From Macrostomum hystrix (lineage: Eukaryota > Animalia > Platyhelminthes), in assembly GCA_950097015.1 (NCBI GenBank), contig CATNEN010000033.1, positions 2,480,001 through 2,544,000 of the forward strand: DNA of 64,000 nt. Reading direction: 5' to 3'. Under the pieces are notes generated by a model that saw nothing but the letters and a program-made list of their open reading frames with translations, was not told the origin of the DNA and made no database searches. Below, piece after piece: positions 5,201 through 21,099 of the stretch. The position numbers and the translations under genes were made by a program. Numbering within the stretch: position 1 is the stretch's first letter; each line of letters opens with the position of its first letter.

Positions 5201-8200
5201 CTGCCGCAGTACAAGCAGGAAGCGCCAAAAACACCGCCGCATATTATTCTGCACTATTCGGCCTTCAAAACGATCTGGGACTGGATTATCTTAATCCTCA
5301 CGGGCTACACCGCTGTCATGGTCCCATTTAATGTGGCCTTCAAATTTAAAACAATGGACGATGTGTCCTTCATAGTGACTGACAGCATTGTTGATGTAAT
5401 TTTCTTCATTGACATTGTGCTGAACTTTCACACAACATTCGTGGGTCCCAACGGCGAAGTGATATCTGACCCGTCCATCATTCGGGTGAACTACCTGAAG
5501 GGCTGGTTCGTCATTGACCTGCTTTCGTGCCTTCCCTACGACGTGTTCAACGCGTTTCAACCCGAGTCAACGGACGTGAGTTCTCATGAGCAGCAGTTTT
5601 TTTCATCCGGTATCAACCTTTTCTTCATTTTCATTCGAGGACCAAATTTTATACATTTTCGCTACTATTTAATGCTGATCTTCGAGGCTAGAGCTGAGTT
5701 GGCTGAATCTGACTGGACCCACCAAATCTACTTGAGCACGAATGGAATCCTTGAGTAGTCGAAGAGCATTGTTTTAGACACGTTTCAACTTCTGGAATTT
5801 CAGAAAATTATCCAAGATGCGCTCCAGGACTCACGGTCAGGGTCTCTGACTTGAGCACTCAGTAATACATTTCTGAGCATATGAGAAATTTTTATTTTAA
5901 AATTTAAAAAATTCGTAATTTCGCCGAGAAGAAGTTGGCAAAAAACAACGAAAATGTACTTTTAGCCGCTATAAAGTGTCCCGCTTGTTGCCAGGTTGGC
6001 CCGTCATTGTTCCATCAGTCGGGCTTGTCTCCGTCCTTCCCTCCGTCATAAAAAAATAGGTAGGCAATCACCTGGAGCTGCACAAAAGACTTCTGGCCTG
6101 ACGAGTGCAGCCGGGTTTGCACCGAACTTTGCTGCTCAAGCCCTGCCCAGCTCACAGTTAGCCAGCCCATGCCTCAATGCAAACCGAGCAGGATTTTTGC
6201 ACCTGTGTCGATGCTCACTCAAGCCAAAGCGGTCAATTGGACGGATCAATTATACACCTAGACTAAATCTCTAAGATCCTAAATAGATAAACTATGCCTG
6301 CTACTATTGGGTTTGAGCTGATGCCATGAGAACGAGCATGGGCAAAAGATATCACCCAAACCCCAAATCCCAAACCCCAAATCACAAATCCCAAACACCA
6401 AATCCCAAAATCCAAATCCTAAACTCCAAATCCCAAACCCCAAATCCCAAACCCCAAATCACAAATCCCAAACACCAAATCCCAAAATCCAAATCCTAAA
6501 CTCCAAATCCCAAACCCCATATCCCAAACCCCAAGTCCAAATCCCAAATCCCAAACACCAAATCCCAAAATCCAAATCACAAACTCCAAATCCCAAACCC
6601 CAAACCCCAAATCCCAAACCCCAAACCCCAAACCCCAAATCCCAAACCCCAAATCCCAAATCCCAAACACCAAACTCCAAATCCCAAACACTAAACCCTA
6701 AACCCTAAATCCTAAACCCCAAACCCTAAATCCCAAACTCCGAATCCCAAACCCAAGTCCGAAATCCCAAATCGCATACCCCAAATGCCAAACAGTTGCG
6801 TTTCTGTTGTCTTGGATTCTTGTGTCAGCATCAGTCCAGGGTCAGTCAGTGGTGTGTCAGCATCAGTCCAGGGTCAGTCAGTGGTGTGTCAGCATCAGTC
6901 CAGGGTCAGTCAGTGGTGTGTCAGCATCAGTCCAGGGTCAGTCAGTGGTGTGTCAGCATCAGTCCAGGGTCAGTCAGTGGTGTGTCAGCATCAGTCCAGG
7001 GTCAGTCAGTGGTGTGTCAGCATCAGTCCAGGGTCAGTCAGTGGTGTGTCAGCATCAGTCCAGGGTCAGTCAGTGGTGTGTCAGCATCAGTCCAGGGTCA
7101 GTCAGTGGTGTGTCAGCATCAGTCCAGGGTCAGTCAGTGGTGTGTCAGCATCAGCCATCTCTCCTTCCCCACAGGGCGGCATCAGCAGTCTGTTCAGCGC
7201 GCTCAAAGTTGTTCGCCTGCTGAGAATCGGTCGCGTTGCTCGCAAGGTCGATCAGTACCTGGAATACGGAGCAGCGCTGCTCATCCTGATGATCTTCGGC
7301 TTCGTGCTGTTGGCGCACTGGATGGCCTGCGTCTGGTACACAATCGGCCTGCGGGATCTGGACATGGAGATCTGGTACGGCTGGATTCCACGACTGGCCA
7401 ATGACTCGCTGGACACCAAGAACTGGACTAAGAACACCTACCAGGCCCAGCTGCCTGACAAGTCCATGGCCTACCTAACCTCTCTGTACTTCACCCTGTC
7501 ACTGCTCACCAGCGTGGGCTTCGGCAACGTGGCCGCCTACACCGAGGGAGAGAAGGCGGTGGTGGTTGTCTTCATGCTGCTGGGCGGTGAGCGGCCGGCA
7601 GGACTCGGCTCATGGGAGCCATTCTTTGGGGGGATTTGGATAAGGGGATCTTGATGAGAAAGTTGGATGACAAAATTGTGGGATGATGGGATGGGTGAAT
7701 GGCGGGATTACGGTGAGGGGATGGGATTTGGGTGAGGGGATGGGTTTGGGTGAGGGGATGGGTTTGGGTGAGGGGATGGTTGGGTAAGGGGATGAGTTTG
7801 GGTGAGGGGATGTGTTTGGGTGAGGGGATGGGATTGGATGAGGGGATGGGATGGGTTGGGTTTTGGTGAGGGGATGGGATTAAATGACGGGATGTGTTTG
7901 GGTGAGGGGATGGGTTTGGGTGAGGGGATGGGTTTGGGTGAGGGGATGGGTTTGGGTAAGGGGATGAGTTTGGGTGAGGGGATGTGTTTGGGTGAGGGGA
8001 TGGGATTGGATGAGGGGATGGGATGGGTTGGGTTTTGGTGAGGGGATGGGATTGAATGACGGGATGTGTTTGGGTGAGGGGATGGGTTTGGGTAAGGGGA
8101 TGGGTTTGGGTAAGGGGATGGGTTTGGGTGAGGGGATGGGTTTGGGTGAGGGGATGGGTTTGGGTAAGGGGATGAGTTTGGGTGAGGGGATGTGTTTGGG

Positions 8201-11200
8201 TGAGGGGATGGGATTGGATGAGGGGATGGGATGGGTTGGGTTTTGGTGAGGGGATGGGATTGAATGACGGGATGTGTTTGGGTGAGGGGATGGGATTGGG
8301 TAAGGGGATGCGTTTGGGTGAGGGGATGGGTTTGGGTAAGGGGATGAGTTTGGGTGAGGGGATGTGTTTGGGTGAGGGGATGGGATTGGATGAGGGGATG
8401 GGATTGGATGAGCGGATGGGATTGGGTGAGGAGATGGGATTGGATGAGGGGATGGGATTGGATGAGGGGATGGGATGGGTTGGGTTTTGGTGAGGGGATG
8501 GGATTGAATGACGGGATGTGTTTGGGTGAGGGGATGGGATTGGATGAGGGGATGGGATGGGTTGGGTTTTGGTGAGGGGATGGGATTGAATGACGGGATG
8601 TGTTTGGGTGAGGGGATGGGATTGGGTAAGGGGATGCGTTTGGGTGAGGGGATGGGTTTGGGTAAGGGGATGAGTTTGGGTGAGGGGATGTGTTTGGGTG
8701 AGGGGATGGGATTGGATGAGGGGATGGGATTGGATGAGCGGATGGGATTGGGTGAGGAGATGGGATTGGATGAGGGGATGGGATTGGATGAGCGGATGGG
8801 ATGGGTTGGGTTTTGGTGAGGGGATGGGATTGAACGACGGGATGTGTTTGGGTGAGGGGATGGGATTGGGTGAGGGGATGGGTTTGGGTGAGGGGATGGG
8901 ATTGGGTGAGGGGATGGGTTTGGGTGAGGGGATGGGTTTGGGTGAGGGGATGGGTTTGGGTAAGGGGATGAGTTTGGGTGAGGGGATGTGTTTGGGTGAG
9001 GGATGTGTTTGGGTGAGGGGATGGGATTGGATGAGGGGATGGGATGGGTTGGGTTTTGGTGAGGGGATGGGATTGAATGACGGGATGTGTTTGGGTGAGG
9101 GGATGGGTTTGGGTAAGGGGATGGGTTTGGGTAAGGGGATGGGTTTGGGTGAGGGGATGGGTTTGGGTGAGGGGATGTGTTTGGGTGAGGGGATGGGATT
9201 GGATGAGGGGATGGGATGGGTTGGGTTTTGGTGAGGGGATGGGATTGAATGACGGGATGTGTTTGGGTGAGGGGATGTGTTTGGGTGAGGGGATGGGATT
9301 GGATGAGGGGATGGGATTGGATGAGCGGATGGGATTGGGTGAGGGGATGGGATTGGATGAGGGGATGGGATTGGATGAGGGGATGGGATTGGGTGAGTGG
9401 ATAGGATTGAATGAGGGGATGAGTTTGGGTGAGGGGATGGGATTTTGTTTAATGGAGTGGATTTTAATGAGTGTAGTGTGGGGCATTTTGTTAAGCATTG
9501 AGCTAGATTGCATCTGGCACAGGCTTGAATCGAATCCTCACGGTGGGATGTCACGGGAATTGTAATTAGCCGCATTAGATCAAAGGGAGAAATTTATCAT
9601 GTGATTGGTTTGATCTATTTTGATTACCAGTTTGGGTGAACGAACTGGTCTTGCAAATGGGATTTTTACCCGACTTAAGGGGGAGAAGAGAAGAGATAGT
9701 GGATCGCATGTCAACTCGGTAGGAAACTGTCTGAGTAGAAATAGATAAACCGAGGAGAAATTCCAAGAAACGCATACAGCGTCCTCGCTAAATAAGGCAG
9801 CGTCACAGCCACCGGCCCGGGATGATGAAAGCGGATGTCGCTAATTGACCAGTAGTTGAAAGAAAGAAAGACTAATTTTGCAGGCCGCAGGATGCGCTGC
9901 TAGGGTGAGCATGAGCACCCCCATACTCAGTCTCCCTATCCAAACAGTGACAGGCCCGTGAGAGTCTGTCATTAGCGCGGGGCTGGACGCAGCTGGACGT
10001 GCAATTTTCTTGCGTTTTTGAGCCACTTGCAGCAGCGTCTGCGAGAGTCTGCGAGATGAGACAGGCGGATCGGACTGAGACCGATTTAATCCCTTGTGTG
10101 TTCCACGCGCTATGGATAAATTCAATTAGTAGCAATCCCGGGATTTGGCTATCGTTGATGGTTCTGATGATTTTGGGATTTAGGATTCTCACCTGTCGAG
10201 TGGGATAGCATTTCTGAGTCACTAATTTTACTTTTGATATCGGGATATCGGATTTAGGACTTCTTTAGTAACCTGTACGGTCTGCGATTTTCGATTTGGG
10301 ATTTGGGATTGCAGATTTGGGTTTGGTATTTTGGAGTCGGGATTTATGATTTCAGATTTGAAATTGGGGATTTTGGGTTCTGGATTTGGGAATTGGGGTT
10401 CGGGATTGGGGGTTCCGGATTTGGGATTTGGGGTTCGGGATTGGGGGTTCCGGATTTGGGATTTGGGGTTCGGGATTTGGGGTAGGGATTTATGACTTCA
10501 GATTTGGGGTTCGGGATTTTGGATTTCACATTTGAAATTCAGGATTTGGGGTTCGGGATTTGGGGTTCGGGATTTGGGATTTTCCAGTCGCTCCTGGGAA
10601 TTGAGAATGGCATTTGGGAGTTGAATTTCTTAGTCACCACGCAATGCTGTCGTGATTTTTTATTTGGGGTTCAGGACTCGGGATATGGGATTTGTTAGTT
10701 GGAATTTTCCAGTGGCCGGTGTTGCCTGGGATTATAGATGTGGGCTTTATGATTTGCAGTATTTTAATTTCCCAGTTCCCAGTTCGCATCAAGCAACATT
10801 TCCACCGTCATTCCGCAGCTCTCGTGTACGCCACCATCTTCGGCAACGTGACCACAATCTTCCAGCAGATGTACGCCAGCAGAGCTCGCTACCACGAGAT
10901 GATGAACAGCATCAAGGAGTTCATCAAAATACACGACGTTCCCAGGGAGCTGGGCGAGCGAGTGATGGATTATGTCACATCGTCCTGGGCTGTGACCAAG
11001 GGCATCGACACAACCAAGGTGAGACTGGCTGCTCGAGGGACTGCTTTTGAAAATGAAATCGAGCCACGAATGACACGAATAACTTGCTTTCTCAGGTGTT
11101 AAACTACTGCCCGAAGGACATGAAAGCAGATCTCAGCGTGCACCTAAACCGCAAGGTGTTCAATGAGCACCCGGCCTTCAGGCTGGCCTCCGATGGCTGC

Positions 11201-13312
11201 CTGCGGTCGCTGGCGATCAATTTCTCCACGGTGCACACGGCGCCTGGCGACCTCATCTTCCACCAGGGCGAGAGCCTCGACCAGCTCTGCTTTGTGGTCA
11301 GCGGCTCTCTGGAGGTCATCCAGGACGATGAGGTTGTGGCCATTCTGGGTGAGTGCTTGGCTGCCTGACTCTAACAGGTGACCTGCAGATCTAACAGGTG
11401 ACCTGCAGATCTAACAGGTGACCTGCAGATCTAACAGGTGACACCCTGTCTATCAGGTGACAACCCTGCCTAACAGGTGACACTCCTGTCTAACAGGTGA
11501 CACTCCTGCCTAACAGGTGACACCCCTGTCTATCAGTTGACCTGCTGTCTTACAGGTGACACTCCTGTCTAACAGGTGACACTCCTGTCTAACAGGTGAC
11601 ACTCCTGTCTTACAGGTGACACTCCTGTCTAACAGGGGACACCCCTGTCTATCAGTTGACCTGCTGTCTTACAGGTGACACTCTTGTCTAACAAGTCACC
11701 CCTATATGACACCAATGTGTCTGGCAGACAAGTTCAGAAAGCCAGTGTTCCGCCCTTTTCTAGTCATTTTTAGGCCGATGAAAATTCAATCCATTTGCAT
11801 CCATGAAGTAGTAGATAATTCGTGTCCATAAAACCATAACCGGTCCATAAACTGCCAGTTTTACCCGTGGCCATTTTCGATCAAGTAAGGCAGGTAATGC
11901 GTCCCAATGAACTCTATAAAAATGGAATCTTTCGACTGGCTGAACGGACTTAGTCAGCTGACTAACTTCTGCGGCGTGCGCGGAATTTCTTCTTCACATT
12001 AATTAGAGAAAGGAGAGGGACAGGCGGGTAAGAGATTACGGAGCTCGTCCGGATCGACAAATTCGCTGCAATTTTCTTGGCCACACTAAATAGTTGCCAG
12101 GATGCAACAAGACCCGATTATTCATATCGCCCTACCCCCCTAATGCCTGGACTTACCTTATGACATTATTCAGAAGACTTCAGATCCTAGCTTAGGTACC
12201 ATTGTACAAAGTGCAATGCGAGCTATAAATAATAATTTGTACTTTTACATACAAACTTCCGCAGGCAAAGGCGACGTTTTTGGCGACACTTTCTGGCGCG
12301 AGACTCCGCTGGGGCAGTCGGCAGCCAGCGCCAGGGCTCTGACCTACTGCGACCTGCACTGCATCAAGCGGGACAGCCTGCTGGAGGTGCTCAACTTCTA
12401 TCAGGCCTTCTCAAACTCATTCGCCCGCAACTTGGTGCTCACCTACAACATGCGGCACAGGGTGAGTTGGTTCCTGAGCTCGAATCCGCGGCACGGCCGC
12501 GAGAAGGAACGGGGATGGTTTTCATGCAACTTACGCCTATGAGGGCCAGCCACCAAGGCATAGAAATAGTGTAAAATGCCTGAGCAGATGTACTCTCCTG
12601 TGTACCTATCCGTGTGCGTGTGTGTGTGCTCAAGTATCAGCGGAATCTTCAGAACTGCCTCGCGGCTGGCGGCGGGTCGATTGTCTTAATTTTCCATTCC
12701 TAACCCCACCGCAAACTTCCCTCCAGATCATCTTCCGCAAACTTCCCTCCAGATCATCTTCGGCAAACTTCCGTCCAGATCATCTTCCGCAAACTTCCGT
12801 CCAGATCATCTTCCGCAAACTTCCCTCCAGATCATCTTCCGCAAACTTCCCTCCAGATCATCTTCCGCAAACTTCCCTCCAGATCATCTTCCGCAAACTT
12901 CCGTCCAGATCATCTTCCGCAAACTTCCCTCCAGATCATCTTCCGCAAACTTCCCTCCAGATCATCTTCCGCAAACTTCCCTCCAGATCATCTTCCGCAA
13001 AATTGCCGACGTTCGGCGCGAGCGTGAGCTGGCGGAGAAGCGCAAATTCGAACCGCCGCTGTCCGAGCTGAGCTCGCATCACCCGGTGCGCAAGCTGCTC
13101 TCGCGCTTCAAGAAAGGGCCCGACGGGGGCGCTCCTCGACTGAATGGCAGCGTCGGGGGCGGAGGCGGCGACGAGGCGTCATCCTCAGACGGCGCCGCGG
13201 CAGCGGCAGCTGCAGCATCAGAGGCTTCAACGGCCCCTGCAGGCGGTGAGGCAACGCCCATCCCGGCGGCACCGGGCCCGGCTGCGAAGGCCACCAAATG
13301 GTCGCGTCTCTT

Positions 13313-13355
<43 letters not shown>

Positions 13356-14030
13356 AGCGGCGGGGATTCCGGAGCAGCCCCTGCGCCGTCAAAGGAGCCA
13401 ACTGCTGCGGCACCGACACCGGCGAATGAAAGCACCGCGGCCGCAGAAGCTGCTGAAGTGACGTCATCGGGAGGCGGCCGGCTGCTCGGCAAACTCGCCA
13501 AGCCGCCGGAGCCTATCGCTGAAGTCGACGAGGAGACGCCGCGCCCCTCTGCGCGGCCGATGCCACTGTCCACCGGCGCCGATTCCGCAAAGTCGCTCAC
13601 TGAATTCGTTCGCTCGATGCGCGAGGAGCTGCGCCAGGAACTCGGTGGCCTGAGCGACAAAGTCAGCCGGCTGGACAAGCAGATGTCCGAGCTGCTGCGC
13701 CTGCTGCAGATCCCGGCGCCACCGTCCACAGCCGCAAGTGGTGGAGGTAGAAGCAACGGAAGCGGTGGTGGCAGCAGCGGCAGTGGAAGTGGCTTGGGTG
13801 GCAGTAGCGGCAGCAGCAGCGCTATTTCGAGTCAGCCGCAGCCGCGGACATCTGCAGCTGCACCGGCGGCAGCCGCCCCAGCCAAAGCTGGAGGTGGCAG
13901 CTTTGCCGCGAAGCTGCTGAAGTCAGCCAACGCACCTCCAGCCGCCGCGCCAGCCGCCGCGAACCCCGCAGCAACAGCGGCGGCAACGGCAGCTGTGAAG
14001 AGCAAAATGGACGACCTTGACATGCTGTGA
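2279..14030 (+). CDS. eag: Ether-a-go-go voltage-gated K+ channel (KCNH1/KCNH5 subfamily); first coding exon lies upstream of the window
   Basis: Phase-consistent GT-AG exons 2279-2508, 3121-3264, 3707-3831, 5177-5575, 7175-7586, 10819-11018, 11096-11348, 12265-12461, 12987-14030. They encode PAS ([23 protein letters not shown]), PAC, S1-S6 with TSVGFGNV pore, C-linker, CNBHD with [18 protein letters not shown] and a C-terminal coiled coil ([24 protein letters not shown]). Confidence 0.96.
3350..3560. repeat. Degenerate ~30-bp intronic minisatellite (CCATTTTATCGATCCACCACCCACCTCACT-like)
   Basis: Several ATTTTATCGAT-containing units; shares this core with the array at 4650-5120. Confidence 0.8.
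4650..5120. repeat. ~30-bp intronic minisatellite (CACTTCACCCGATTTTATCGCTCTGCTGCC-like)
   Basis: About a dozen units ending ~55 bp before the acceptor at 5176. Confidence 0.88.
6354..6790. repeat. Telomere-like C-rich array (AAACCCCAAATCCC)n with a few CCCTAAA units
   Basis: Direct reading; approximately the reverse complement of the array at 10270-10700. Confidence 0.9.
6821..7155. repeat. 32-bp minisatellite (CAGCATCAGTCCAGGGTCAGTCAGTGGTGTGT)n, ~10 copies
   Basis: Period 32 (6841, 6873...); ends ~20 bp before the acceptor at 7174. Confidence 0.96.
7690..9445. repeat. G-rich ~18-bp satellite (GGGTGAGGGGATGGGTTT)n with higher-order structure; G-quadruplex potential on the sense strand
   Basis: Continuous GGG tracts for ~1.75 kb starting ~100 bp after the donor at 7587. 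Confidence 0.95.
10270..10700. repeat. Degenerate G-rich telomere-like array (GGGATTTGGGGTT)n
   Basis: Direct reading; ends ~120 bp before the acceptor at 10818. Confidence 0.85.
11371..11697. repeat. 19-20-bp minisatellite (CTAACAGGTGACCTGCAGAT / CTAACAGGTGACACTCCTGT)n
   Basis: Units at 11371, 11391, 11411, 11431...; begins 22 bp after the donor at 11349. Confidence 0.93.
12708..13001 (+). repeat. 26-bp tandem array made of the eag last-exon splice acceptor (GCAAACTTCCCTCCAG|ATCATCTTCC) x11
   Basis: AG dinucleotides at 12725, 12751, ... 12985 (period 26); the last copy runs into the conserved coding sequence IIFRKIADV. Confidence 0.96.
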
Positions 14031-15181
14031 CGTCAGTACGGCGTCTTCAATGCACCTCTCCTACTCGCTGCACTTCCACCTGACAACTGTATCCCGTCCG
14101 CACCGTTTTTGTCTATTTTCTCCCGCGCCGATCATTATCCTCTCGTTCCGCTTTTGCCACCGTCAAAATGCCAGGCTGACATCAAATGCCAGATGTAAAC
14201 AAATTCAAAAATATTCTGTGTCACAATGGCACTCTCGGTGAATCTGATGTCATCTGACTCTACTGCAGTTTGATGCCAAGCCAAAATGAATTTCGCGGCC
14301 CGAATGAGTTTATGGGATCTTCTTCCTGCACTGTTGGGATTCTTCCCATGGCCAGGAGGGATTAAGCAGCCTCACTAATTTCCTCACATTTCCGCACCAT
14401 GTCTCGCTCACTTCCTGTGGAAATGCAGCTCAGCTTGAGCACTCTTTAGCAGCTGAGAAGCAGCACTTGTCAGTACTCGCGGCTCAATTTGACGCCCGGC
14501 CCAATTGTCTGCTGTATTTTTCAACTGGATTATTTTTCGATACGATGCAAAACTTTGCAAACGCTGCTTGCATGCCTGCAATGTCACTTTGATATGCTTT
14601 TTGCACTGCGGTAAGCACATTGGATAATAACTAAATAAATCATAGATGCTGCGTTTTTCTGTCCGCAACTGAACCATTTTAACTAGGCGCCATTCCGTCA
14701 GTAATACACTACTGCTGTGCTTGATGCGCAGTAGTGTGACTCGAAAGTTTAAAACCAATGGAGAATTAAAAACACTCGGTGATTATGTTTTATGTTTTGT
14801 CAATTCTCCCGCTCAAATATTGGATTTCGTTAGAAAATCTCTGACATAAAAATGGAATTTTTTCTCAACCGATCTCCTACTCAAAGTTTAAACTACTTAC
14901 AGTAGCTTAAAGTATATTTAAGTTGAAACCTTCTCAAAGAGGGACAGTTTTGCCAGCACTTGCAGCTATTCGGCAGGGCAGGACAGAACTTTAGAAAAAT
15001 AAATAGAGCAAGCAACAAACAAAAAAGTTTTTAAGCCCCAATTCAGGACTTTAGTATGAGGATAAAAAACAACAAAGCACAGAAAGTCACAATTCATTTG
15101 GAACTTAAAAAACCCATTGTTAAAAGGGCCCCAGCCCGCTTTGTGCAGCTCCGGTTGCTGCCCTGGCCACTGCCGCAGCGC

Positions 15182-20902: not shown

Positions 20903-21099
20903 GGGGGTGGATGGCAGAGCGGTCAAAGCGTTAGCCTCTTGAAACAAGGTTATTGAGCTCGATTCCGCGGCTAGGCCAAGTTCGTGCTTGGGGGCTTGTC
21001 GTGCAATTTTCGCCCTTGAGGGCCAATCTCCAAGGTGCAGTGAAGGTGAACACTGCTTGACGTCGAGAAAGTCTTGGCTTCCTCGCTGGACTGCAGGTC

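Follow-up and report, generated by a model that had tools for sequence, protein, structure and literature searches.

How is an intron removed when its 3' splice site is present eleven times over? The question arises in the last intron of an EAG potassium-channel gene of Macrostomum hystrix, where a minisatellite repeats the intron/exon junction itself, and a second question follows from it: does the choice among the copies, or their number modulo 3, decide between a full-length and a truncated channel, as an initial annotation of the sequence had supposed? I propose that the array is a young minisatellite of the kind called a mirage in amphioxus and that it is spliced out at its last copy, so that its length is neutral for the reading frame. 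I put the probability of this reading at roughly four in five.

The gene and its last junction

The window, the whole 64-kb stretch of DNA analysed here, contains the greater part of an EAG (KCNH1-like) potassium-channel gene. The gene lies on the + strand, as do all the features of it and of its last intron given below. When the exons were searched one at a time, a PAS (eag) domain was found in the exon at 2310-2507 (PF13426, E = 2.1e-11), an ion-transport core with its pore in the exons at 5318-5590 and 7175-7585 (PF00520), and a cyclic-nucleotide-binding homology domain, or CNBHD, in the exon at 11096-11347 (PF00027). The last of these matches reached 27.3 bits, just below the cut-off of 27.5 because that exon has part of the domain only. 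The CNBHD ends in the penultimate coding exon (12265-12461), which, as judged by the sequence and by an RNA contig, closes with ...LTYNMRHR at the donor GTGAGT (12461|12462). Beyond it lie the last intron, 525 nt long, in phase 0 and bounded by GT and AG (12462-12986), and the final coding exon (12987-14030) of 347 codons and a stop.

The best PDB matches of the last exon are KCNH1 and KCNH5. Its translation from 12987 aligns from residue 1 to IVFRKISDVKREEE, I678 onward, of the KCNH1 chains 5k7l and 6pbx, and the spliced protein, which reads ...YNMRHR|IIFRKIADV... at the joint, is colinear with solved KCNH1 across the junction 12461->12987. In PMC2877719 the calmodulin sites of KCNH1 are placed at residues 674-683 (BD-C1) and 711-721 (BD-C2). 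Since the exon begins at the equivalent of I678, the junction lies inside BD-C1. A segment of ten residues encoded at 13086-13115 aligns to VRRLFQRFRQ(Q) of KCNH1, in the region of BD-C2 as that paper numbers it, which agrees with the annotation's suggestion that RKLLSRFKK is placed like the calmodulin-binding site of EAG. Further on, residues 199-241 of the query give a weak match to the C-terminal coiled coil of KCNH1, locating that segment at 13581-13709. The same exon contains (CGG)17 at 13313-13363, a poly-glycine run at which both DNA and RNA contigs break (13304-13368).

Anatomy of the array

Tandem Repeats Finder reports a 26-bp minisatellite at 12709-13001, repeated head to tail 11.3 times with 97% matches and no indels. 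Its unit is made of 11 nt of intron end, CTTCCCTCCAG, and 15 nt of exon start, ATCATCTTCCGCAAA. It had been claimed that this unit is the intron/exon junction itself, and so it is, both by direct reading and by the RNA joint at 12986|12987, which the KCNH1 alignment marks as a real junction of the gene. Each copy presents CAG|ATCATCTTC (CAG|ATC), giving the eleven potential exon starts that the annotation had counted, one every 26 nt (12727, 12753 ... 12987). The length of the array, 293 bp, is 11 x 26 + 7, and the surplus 7 bp are the direct repeat CCGCAAA, which bounds the unit as the annotation had said. A query of two units, run against the 220-Mb assembly, found no match outside this array in the EAG gene.

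The copies differ little. Copies 2, 5, 6, 7, 9, 10 and 11 have the same 26 bases upstream of the exon start and were scored as identical over -26 to +15; downstream, from +1 to +15, all copies are alike bar copy 2. Three distinct variants of the unit are interspersed through the array. One change, from C to G at unit position 21, is found in units 2, 3 and 7 (within 12753-12986), and units 3-6 show the same pattern of variants as units 7-10.

The acceptor that is used

The RNA considered here is that of one run, X3, which belongs to another study than the probable source sample and is read as Logan contigs at k=31, from which rare variants are lost. One X3 contig, 1776 nt long and at a depth of 14.8, covers 12264-12460/61, skips 525 nt from GT to AG, and is free of mismatches from 12986/87 to 13301. 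It is also spliced from 11348 to 12265, the exon end at 11348 being seen from its loose end. Only one unit stands between the upstream exon and the unique sequence of the last exon, and so the acceptor used is the eleventh copy (AG 12985-12986). The other ten (12725-12960; AG 12725/6, 12751/2 ... 12959/60) act as decoys, in that no contig of X3, a set sensitive to major forms, joins the donor at 12461 to any of copies 1-10. Two or more acceptors in use, the mark of a regulated 3' splice-site switch, were likewise not seen at that sensitivity. In the main transcript, then, splicing is regular and the duplicates go unused, minor forms being possible in contigs from a single run.

Some RNA from the array is nonetheless present. 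A second X3 contig, of 56 nt, matches one full turn of the unit exactly, for which at least two copies in tandem are needed. Its word depth is 6.48 and its 31-mers occur in the array 6.3 times on average, so that each copy stands at about 1x, some 7% of the exon's 14.8x. Since the unit is unique to the EAG locus, this RNA originates there. It could be unspliced pre-mRNA or it could be minor isoforms that take upstream acceptors. The unique sequence of the intron has no coverage in X3, but words at 1x would have been filtered out, and the missing coverage therefore does not separate the two.

Two further data sets, X9 and X10, presumed to be RNA from the related organisms B and C, yielded over 11720-14100 either no contig or just low-complexity matches. 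A protein word search with the read-through translation of 12753-14027, in which low-complexity words saturated the candidates, returned no insert derived from the repeat; its sole match, P0001, covered the true exon only. Limited to residues 1-50 of the last exon, the same kind of search returned no match.

Does the array switch the reading frame?

The unit is not a multiple of three, and the arithmetic that the annotation built on this was borne out: copies 2, 5, 8 and 11, adding 78, 52, 26 and 0 residues, lead into a frame without a stop until 14030. For the remaining copies its account was right as far as it went. Use of copy 1, as of copies 4, 7 and 10, does lead to a stop at 13069-13071, and the frame entered from copies 3, 6 and 9, which stops at 13025-13027, was missing from the claim.

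From these frames came the idea of a switch. If the upstream acceptors were used at levels that matter for function, or if the first copy were used so that the allelic number of copies modulo 3 set the frame, the product would be either the whole channel or a truncated one that ends before the BD-C2 calmodulin site and the coiled coil. There are reasons to take this seriously. The acceptors are nearly identical, the best match to a branch point precedes copy 1, words of the array are found in RNA at the level given above, and the stops met from the out-of-frame copies sit in the last exon, where truncated mRNAs might escape junction-dependent decay. It is too much, however, to ask of the transcript at hand, which takes the last copy and passes unbroken through a branch point of the assembly graph, with no contig joined to an upstream copy; and the RNA of the array is equally well explained by unspliced pre-mRNA summed over about six identical copies. 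With the last copy in use, all other copies are intronic and the length of the array cannot shift the frame. The annotation had itself named exclusive use of the last acceptor as the result that would tell against it, and this is what the sole assembled transcript contig of this gene, from X3, presents, use of upstream copies up to about 10% being possible. A switch is thus very unlikely.

A weaker form of the idea is that a minority of transcripts, at most 10%, use the upstream copies and that array length, varying between individuals, sets the fraction. I consider this unlikely. If upstream copies were used, the products would be EAG subunits truncated after the CNBHD, without BD-C2 and the tetramerising coiled coil, or subunits longer by 26-78 residues that repeat the IIFRK half of BD-C1, and in either case a heritable dial on channel output.

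The decoys might instead matter without altering the protein. Ten sites that bind U2AF/U2 could slow or divert splicing, so that the length of the array tunes the yield of EAG mRNA and the protein stays the same. The ten decoys are of full strength, and some RNA of the array is present in X3, as such an attenuator would have it. Set against this, the X3 contig of this gene is deeper than that of the paralogue on contig C11 (14.8 vs 3.9), contig depth being a poor measure of expression, and attenuation appears quite improbable.

There is also the matter of how many copies the genome has. The number eleven comes from the assembly only, and contigs made with k=31 cannot count units of 26 bp. In X1, a DNA run also read as k=31 contigs and from a study independent of that of X3, the contigs end at the edges of the array (12730 and 12972), and word depth rises from about 85-98 in the flanks to 150-860 in the bins of the array, which fits many copies and gives no count. 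Such data are blind to polymorphism, since an allele of one copy has no 31-mer that is absent from an allele of many. The assembly, 220 Mb in 42 contigs, was presumably made from long reads, which easily span 293 bp, making an artefact unlikely on that ground. That the true locus has one copy or few, the assembler having supplied the rest, is hardly credible when unit-to-unit words occur in two independent studies, one of DNA and one of RNA, when depth rises over the array as it does, and when three distinct variants are interspersed among the units.

How the last copy might be chosen

If the reading preferred here is correct, and the array is spliced out at its last copy, the splicing machinery makes a choice that the sequence around the acceptors does not make for it. 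Seven of the eleven copies being identical from -26 to +15, no local signal can single out the last. Nor does the obvious branch point help. The annotation had called CTAAC (12700-12704) the only canonical branch-like site, lying before the first copy, and a pattern scan concurs: it is the sole strict match to yUnAy in the last 300 nt of the intron. Within the array each unit offers no more than AUCAU, a relaxed match placed 23 nt ahead of the exon start that follows. With identical acceptors and one consensus branch point ahead of copy 1, simple scanning for the first AG does not predict use of the last copy, and exclusive use of the last copy runs against it.

What does differ is the sequence beyond +15. 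There the decoys pass directly into the next pyrimidine tract, whereas the coding sequence of the real exon goes on rich in GC and purines and includes GGAGAAG at 13034. My best guess is that the last copy is served by a weak branch point, the AUCAU of unit 10 with its A at 12964, 23 nt upstream of the exon, in combination with definition of the exon by downstream exonic enhancers, of which GGAGAAG may be one. The effect of enhancers declines with distance from the 3' splice site. The last copy, which alone has real exon sequence after it, would then be the one that the spliceosome joins to the upstream exon, and the ten upstream copies would leave with the intron.

Two other uses of the units were considered and set aside. 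They can hardly serve as cassette exons, the major unit having no GT and a variant offering only GTCCAG. Recursive splicing fares no better by direct reading, in that ...CACAGG joined to ATCATC regenerates no donor.

Origin of the array

The penultimate exon has three further counterparts in the genome, on contigs C39 (9776943-9777358), C30 (3353681-3353864) and C11 (1786237-1790957), at 82-85% identity, and all three have the donor at the same position (...RHR|GT). For C39 and C11 the last exon was located as well, each preceded by one acceptor at the same phase-0 intron position: CACAG|ATCGTTTTTCGTAAAATT in C39, after an intron of 88 nt, and TTCCAG|TTGGTCTTCCGCAAAATC in C11, after one of about 4.4 kb. 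The C11 junction is present in X3 RNA. The exon part of the unit, TCTTCCGCAAAAT, is shared with the C11 paralogue. By this comparison the CCGCAAA on the exon side is ancestral and the array is younger than the divergence of the paralogues. When the intron ends of the paralogues were aligned, nothing convincing emerged beyond a possible match CCCCACC(C)GCA between C33 and C39.

The match P0001, mentioned above, is an ENA contig of 12.4 kb from another species. It has the ORF of a last exon from a distant EAG homologue, 55% identical over the region of BD-C1 and BD-C2. The ORF starts about ten codons before ...Q|LVFRKVSD, which would fit an intron at this same place in a distant animal.

The array may have begun with the duplication, in one EAG paralogue, of a 26-bp piece lying across the last intron's 3' splice site; slippage between a pair of CCGCAAA repeats, set 26 bp from each other, is the probable cause. 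The 7-bp extension beyond eleven whole units fits slippage of this sort, being improbable by chance (I estimate about 8 x 4^-7). Growth to eleven copies would have followed by unequal exchange. The pattern of variants common to units 3-6 and 7-10 suggests that a block of 104 bp was duplicated along the way.

The left part of the intron belongs to an unclassified dispersed repeat (12469-12685 by blastn boundaries), which begins 8 nt past the donor, has at least 35 matches in the genome at 68-72% identity, and occurs again as a partial copy at 20948-21035. Scans of the intron for tRNA and with Rfam gave this repeat no match. It was considered as the cause of the array and rejected: two other copies (L007 and L008) have no adjoining array.

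Tandem arrays are in any case common here. The window has 30 of them, taking up 20% of its length, and nine lie in the span of the EAG gene, where they take up 34%; several of these come to about 20 nt or less from a splice site. Taking the unit as some 30 bp and the density of junctions as some 1.5 per kb, I estimate that chance alone would place a junction inside roughly one array in 20, so that an array like the present one is to be expected in such a genome.

Two of the neighbouring arrays have features of their own. A 20-bp array of 16 copies at 11370-11693 begins 22 nt after the donor 11348|11349, and in its unit, TCTAACAG|GTGAC, a branch-point consensus stands together with an AG and a GT like that of a donor, so that the intron contains 16 look-alikes of recursive splice sites. 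At 6821-7154 there are 10.4 copies of a 32-bp unit, 100% identical, which stop 20 nt short of the acceptor (7174|7175) for the S4/pore exon; the end of that array, GCATCAG, resembles the start of the exon, GGCATCAGCAG.

What the locus offers

Taken alone, the locus is of little consequence: normal channel protein is made, and the array is one splice-junction minisatellite in a genome rich in minisatellites. It is of more use as a natural experiment, and a clean one, on how a 3' splice site is chosen: of the eleven acceptors seven are identical, and yet the last copy is the one in RNA. In the genus, transgenesis is available for Macrostomum lignano (PMC5730564). Together with the other arrays of the genome, it could show exon context overriding both proximity and branch-point strength. 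It also carries a caution for gene prediction, as any of four in-frame acceptors could be picked by an annotator.

Comparison with known systems

The protein is a familiar one. As in EAG/KCNH1 (5k7l, 6pbx), there are exons for the PAS, ion-transport and cyclic-nucleotide-binding homology domains, and the alignment of the last exon starts at I678 and takes in both the BD-C2 region and the C-terminal coiled coil. The protein differs from KCNH1 in a C-terminus of low complexity, rich in Gly and Ala, and in belonging to a genome with four paralogues.

Several AGs compete downstream of one donor also in NAGNAG and other closely spaced 3' splice sites. In NAGNAG the sites are 3 nt apart, share a branch point and are both used. 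In the EAG array the spacing is 26 nt, every site comes with a pyrimidine tract of its own, and RNA shows a single site in use.

A nearer likeness is found in amphioxus, where tandem minisatellites that span exon-intron boundaries, termed mirages, have been described in Adh3 and in the globin genes BflGb6 and BflGb9 (PMC3087553). Those arrays carry AG/GT signals and vary in length between haplotypes, and regular splicing is undisturbed by them (PMC3087553). The case of Adh3 is taken here from that paper, which cites the original Adh3 report; the units of the Adh3 mirage are there given as 10-72 bp, a range that includes the 26 bp of the EAG unit (PMC3087553). A search of the literature found no paper on Macrostomum together with junction-spanning minisatellites, and the hosts are far apart, a cephalochordate there and a flatworm here. 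What the two share is a unit that straddles the boundary of intron and exon, splice signals in the copies, and splicing that stays regular. Instability of length between haplotypes has been shown in amphioxus, and the EAG array has the other three of the four features that define a mirage. The EAG array is therefore of the mirage kind, already known from amphioxus, rather than a demonstrated switch of the reading frame.
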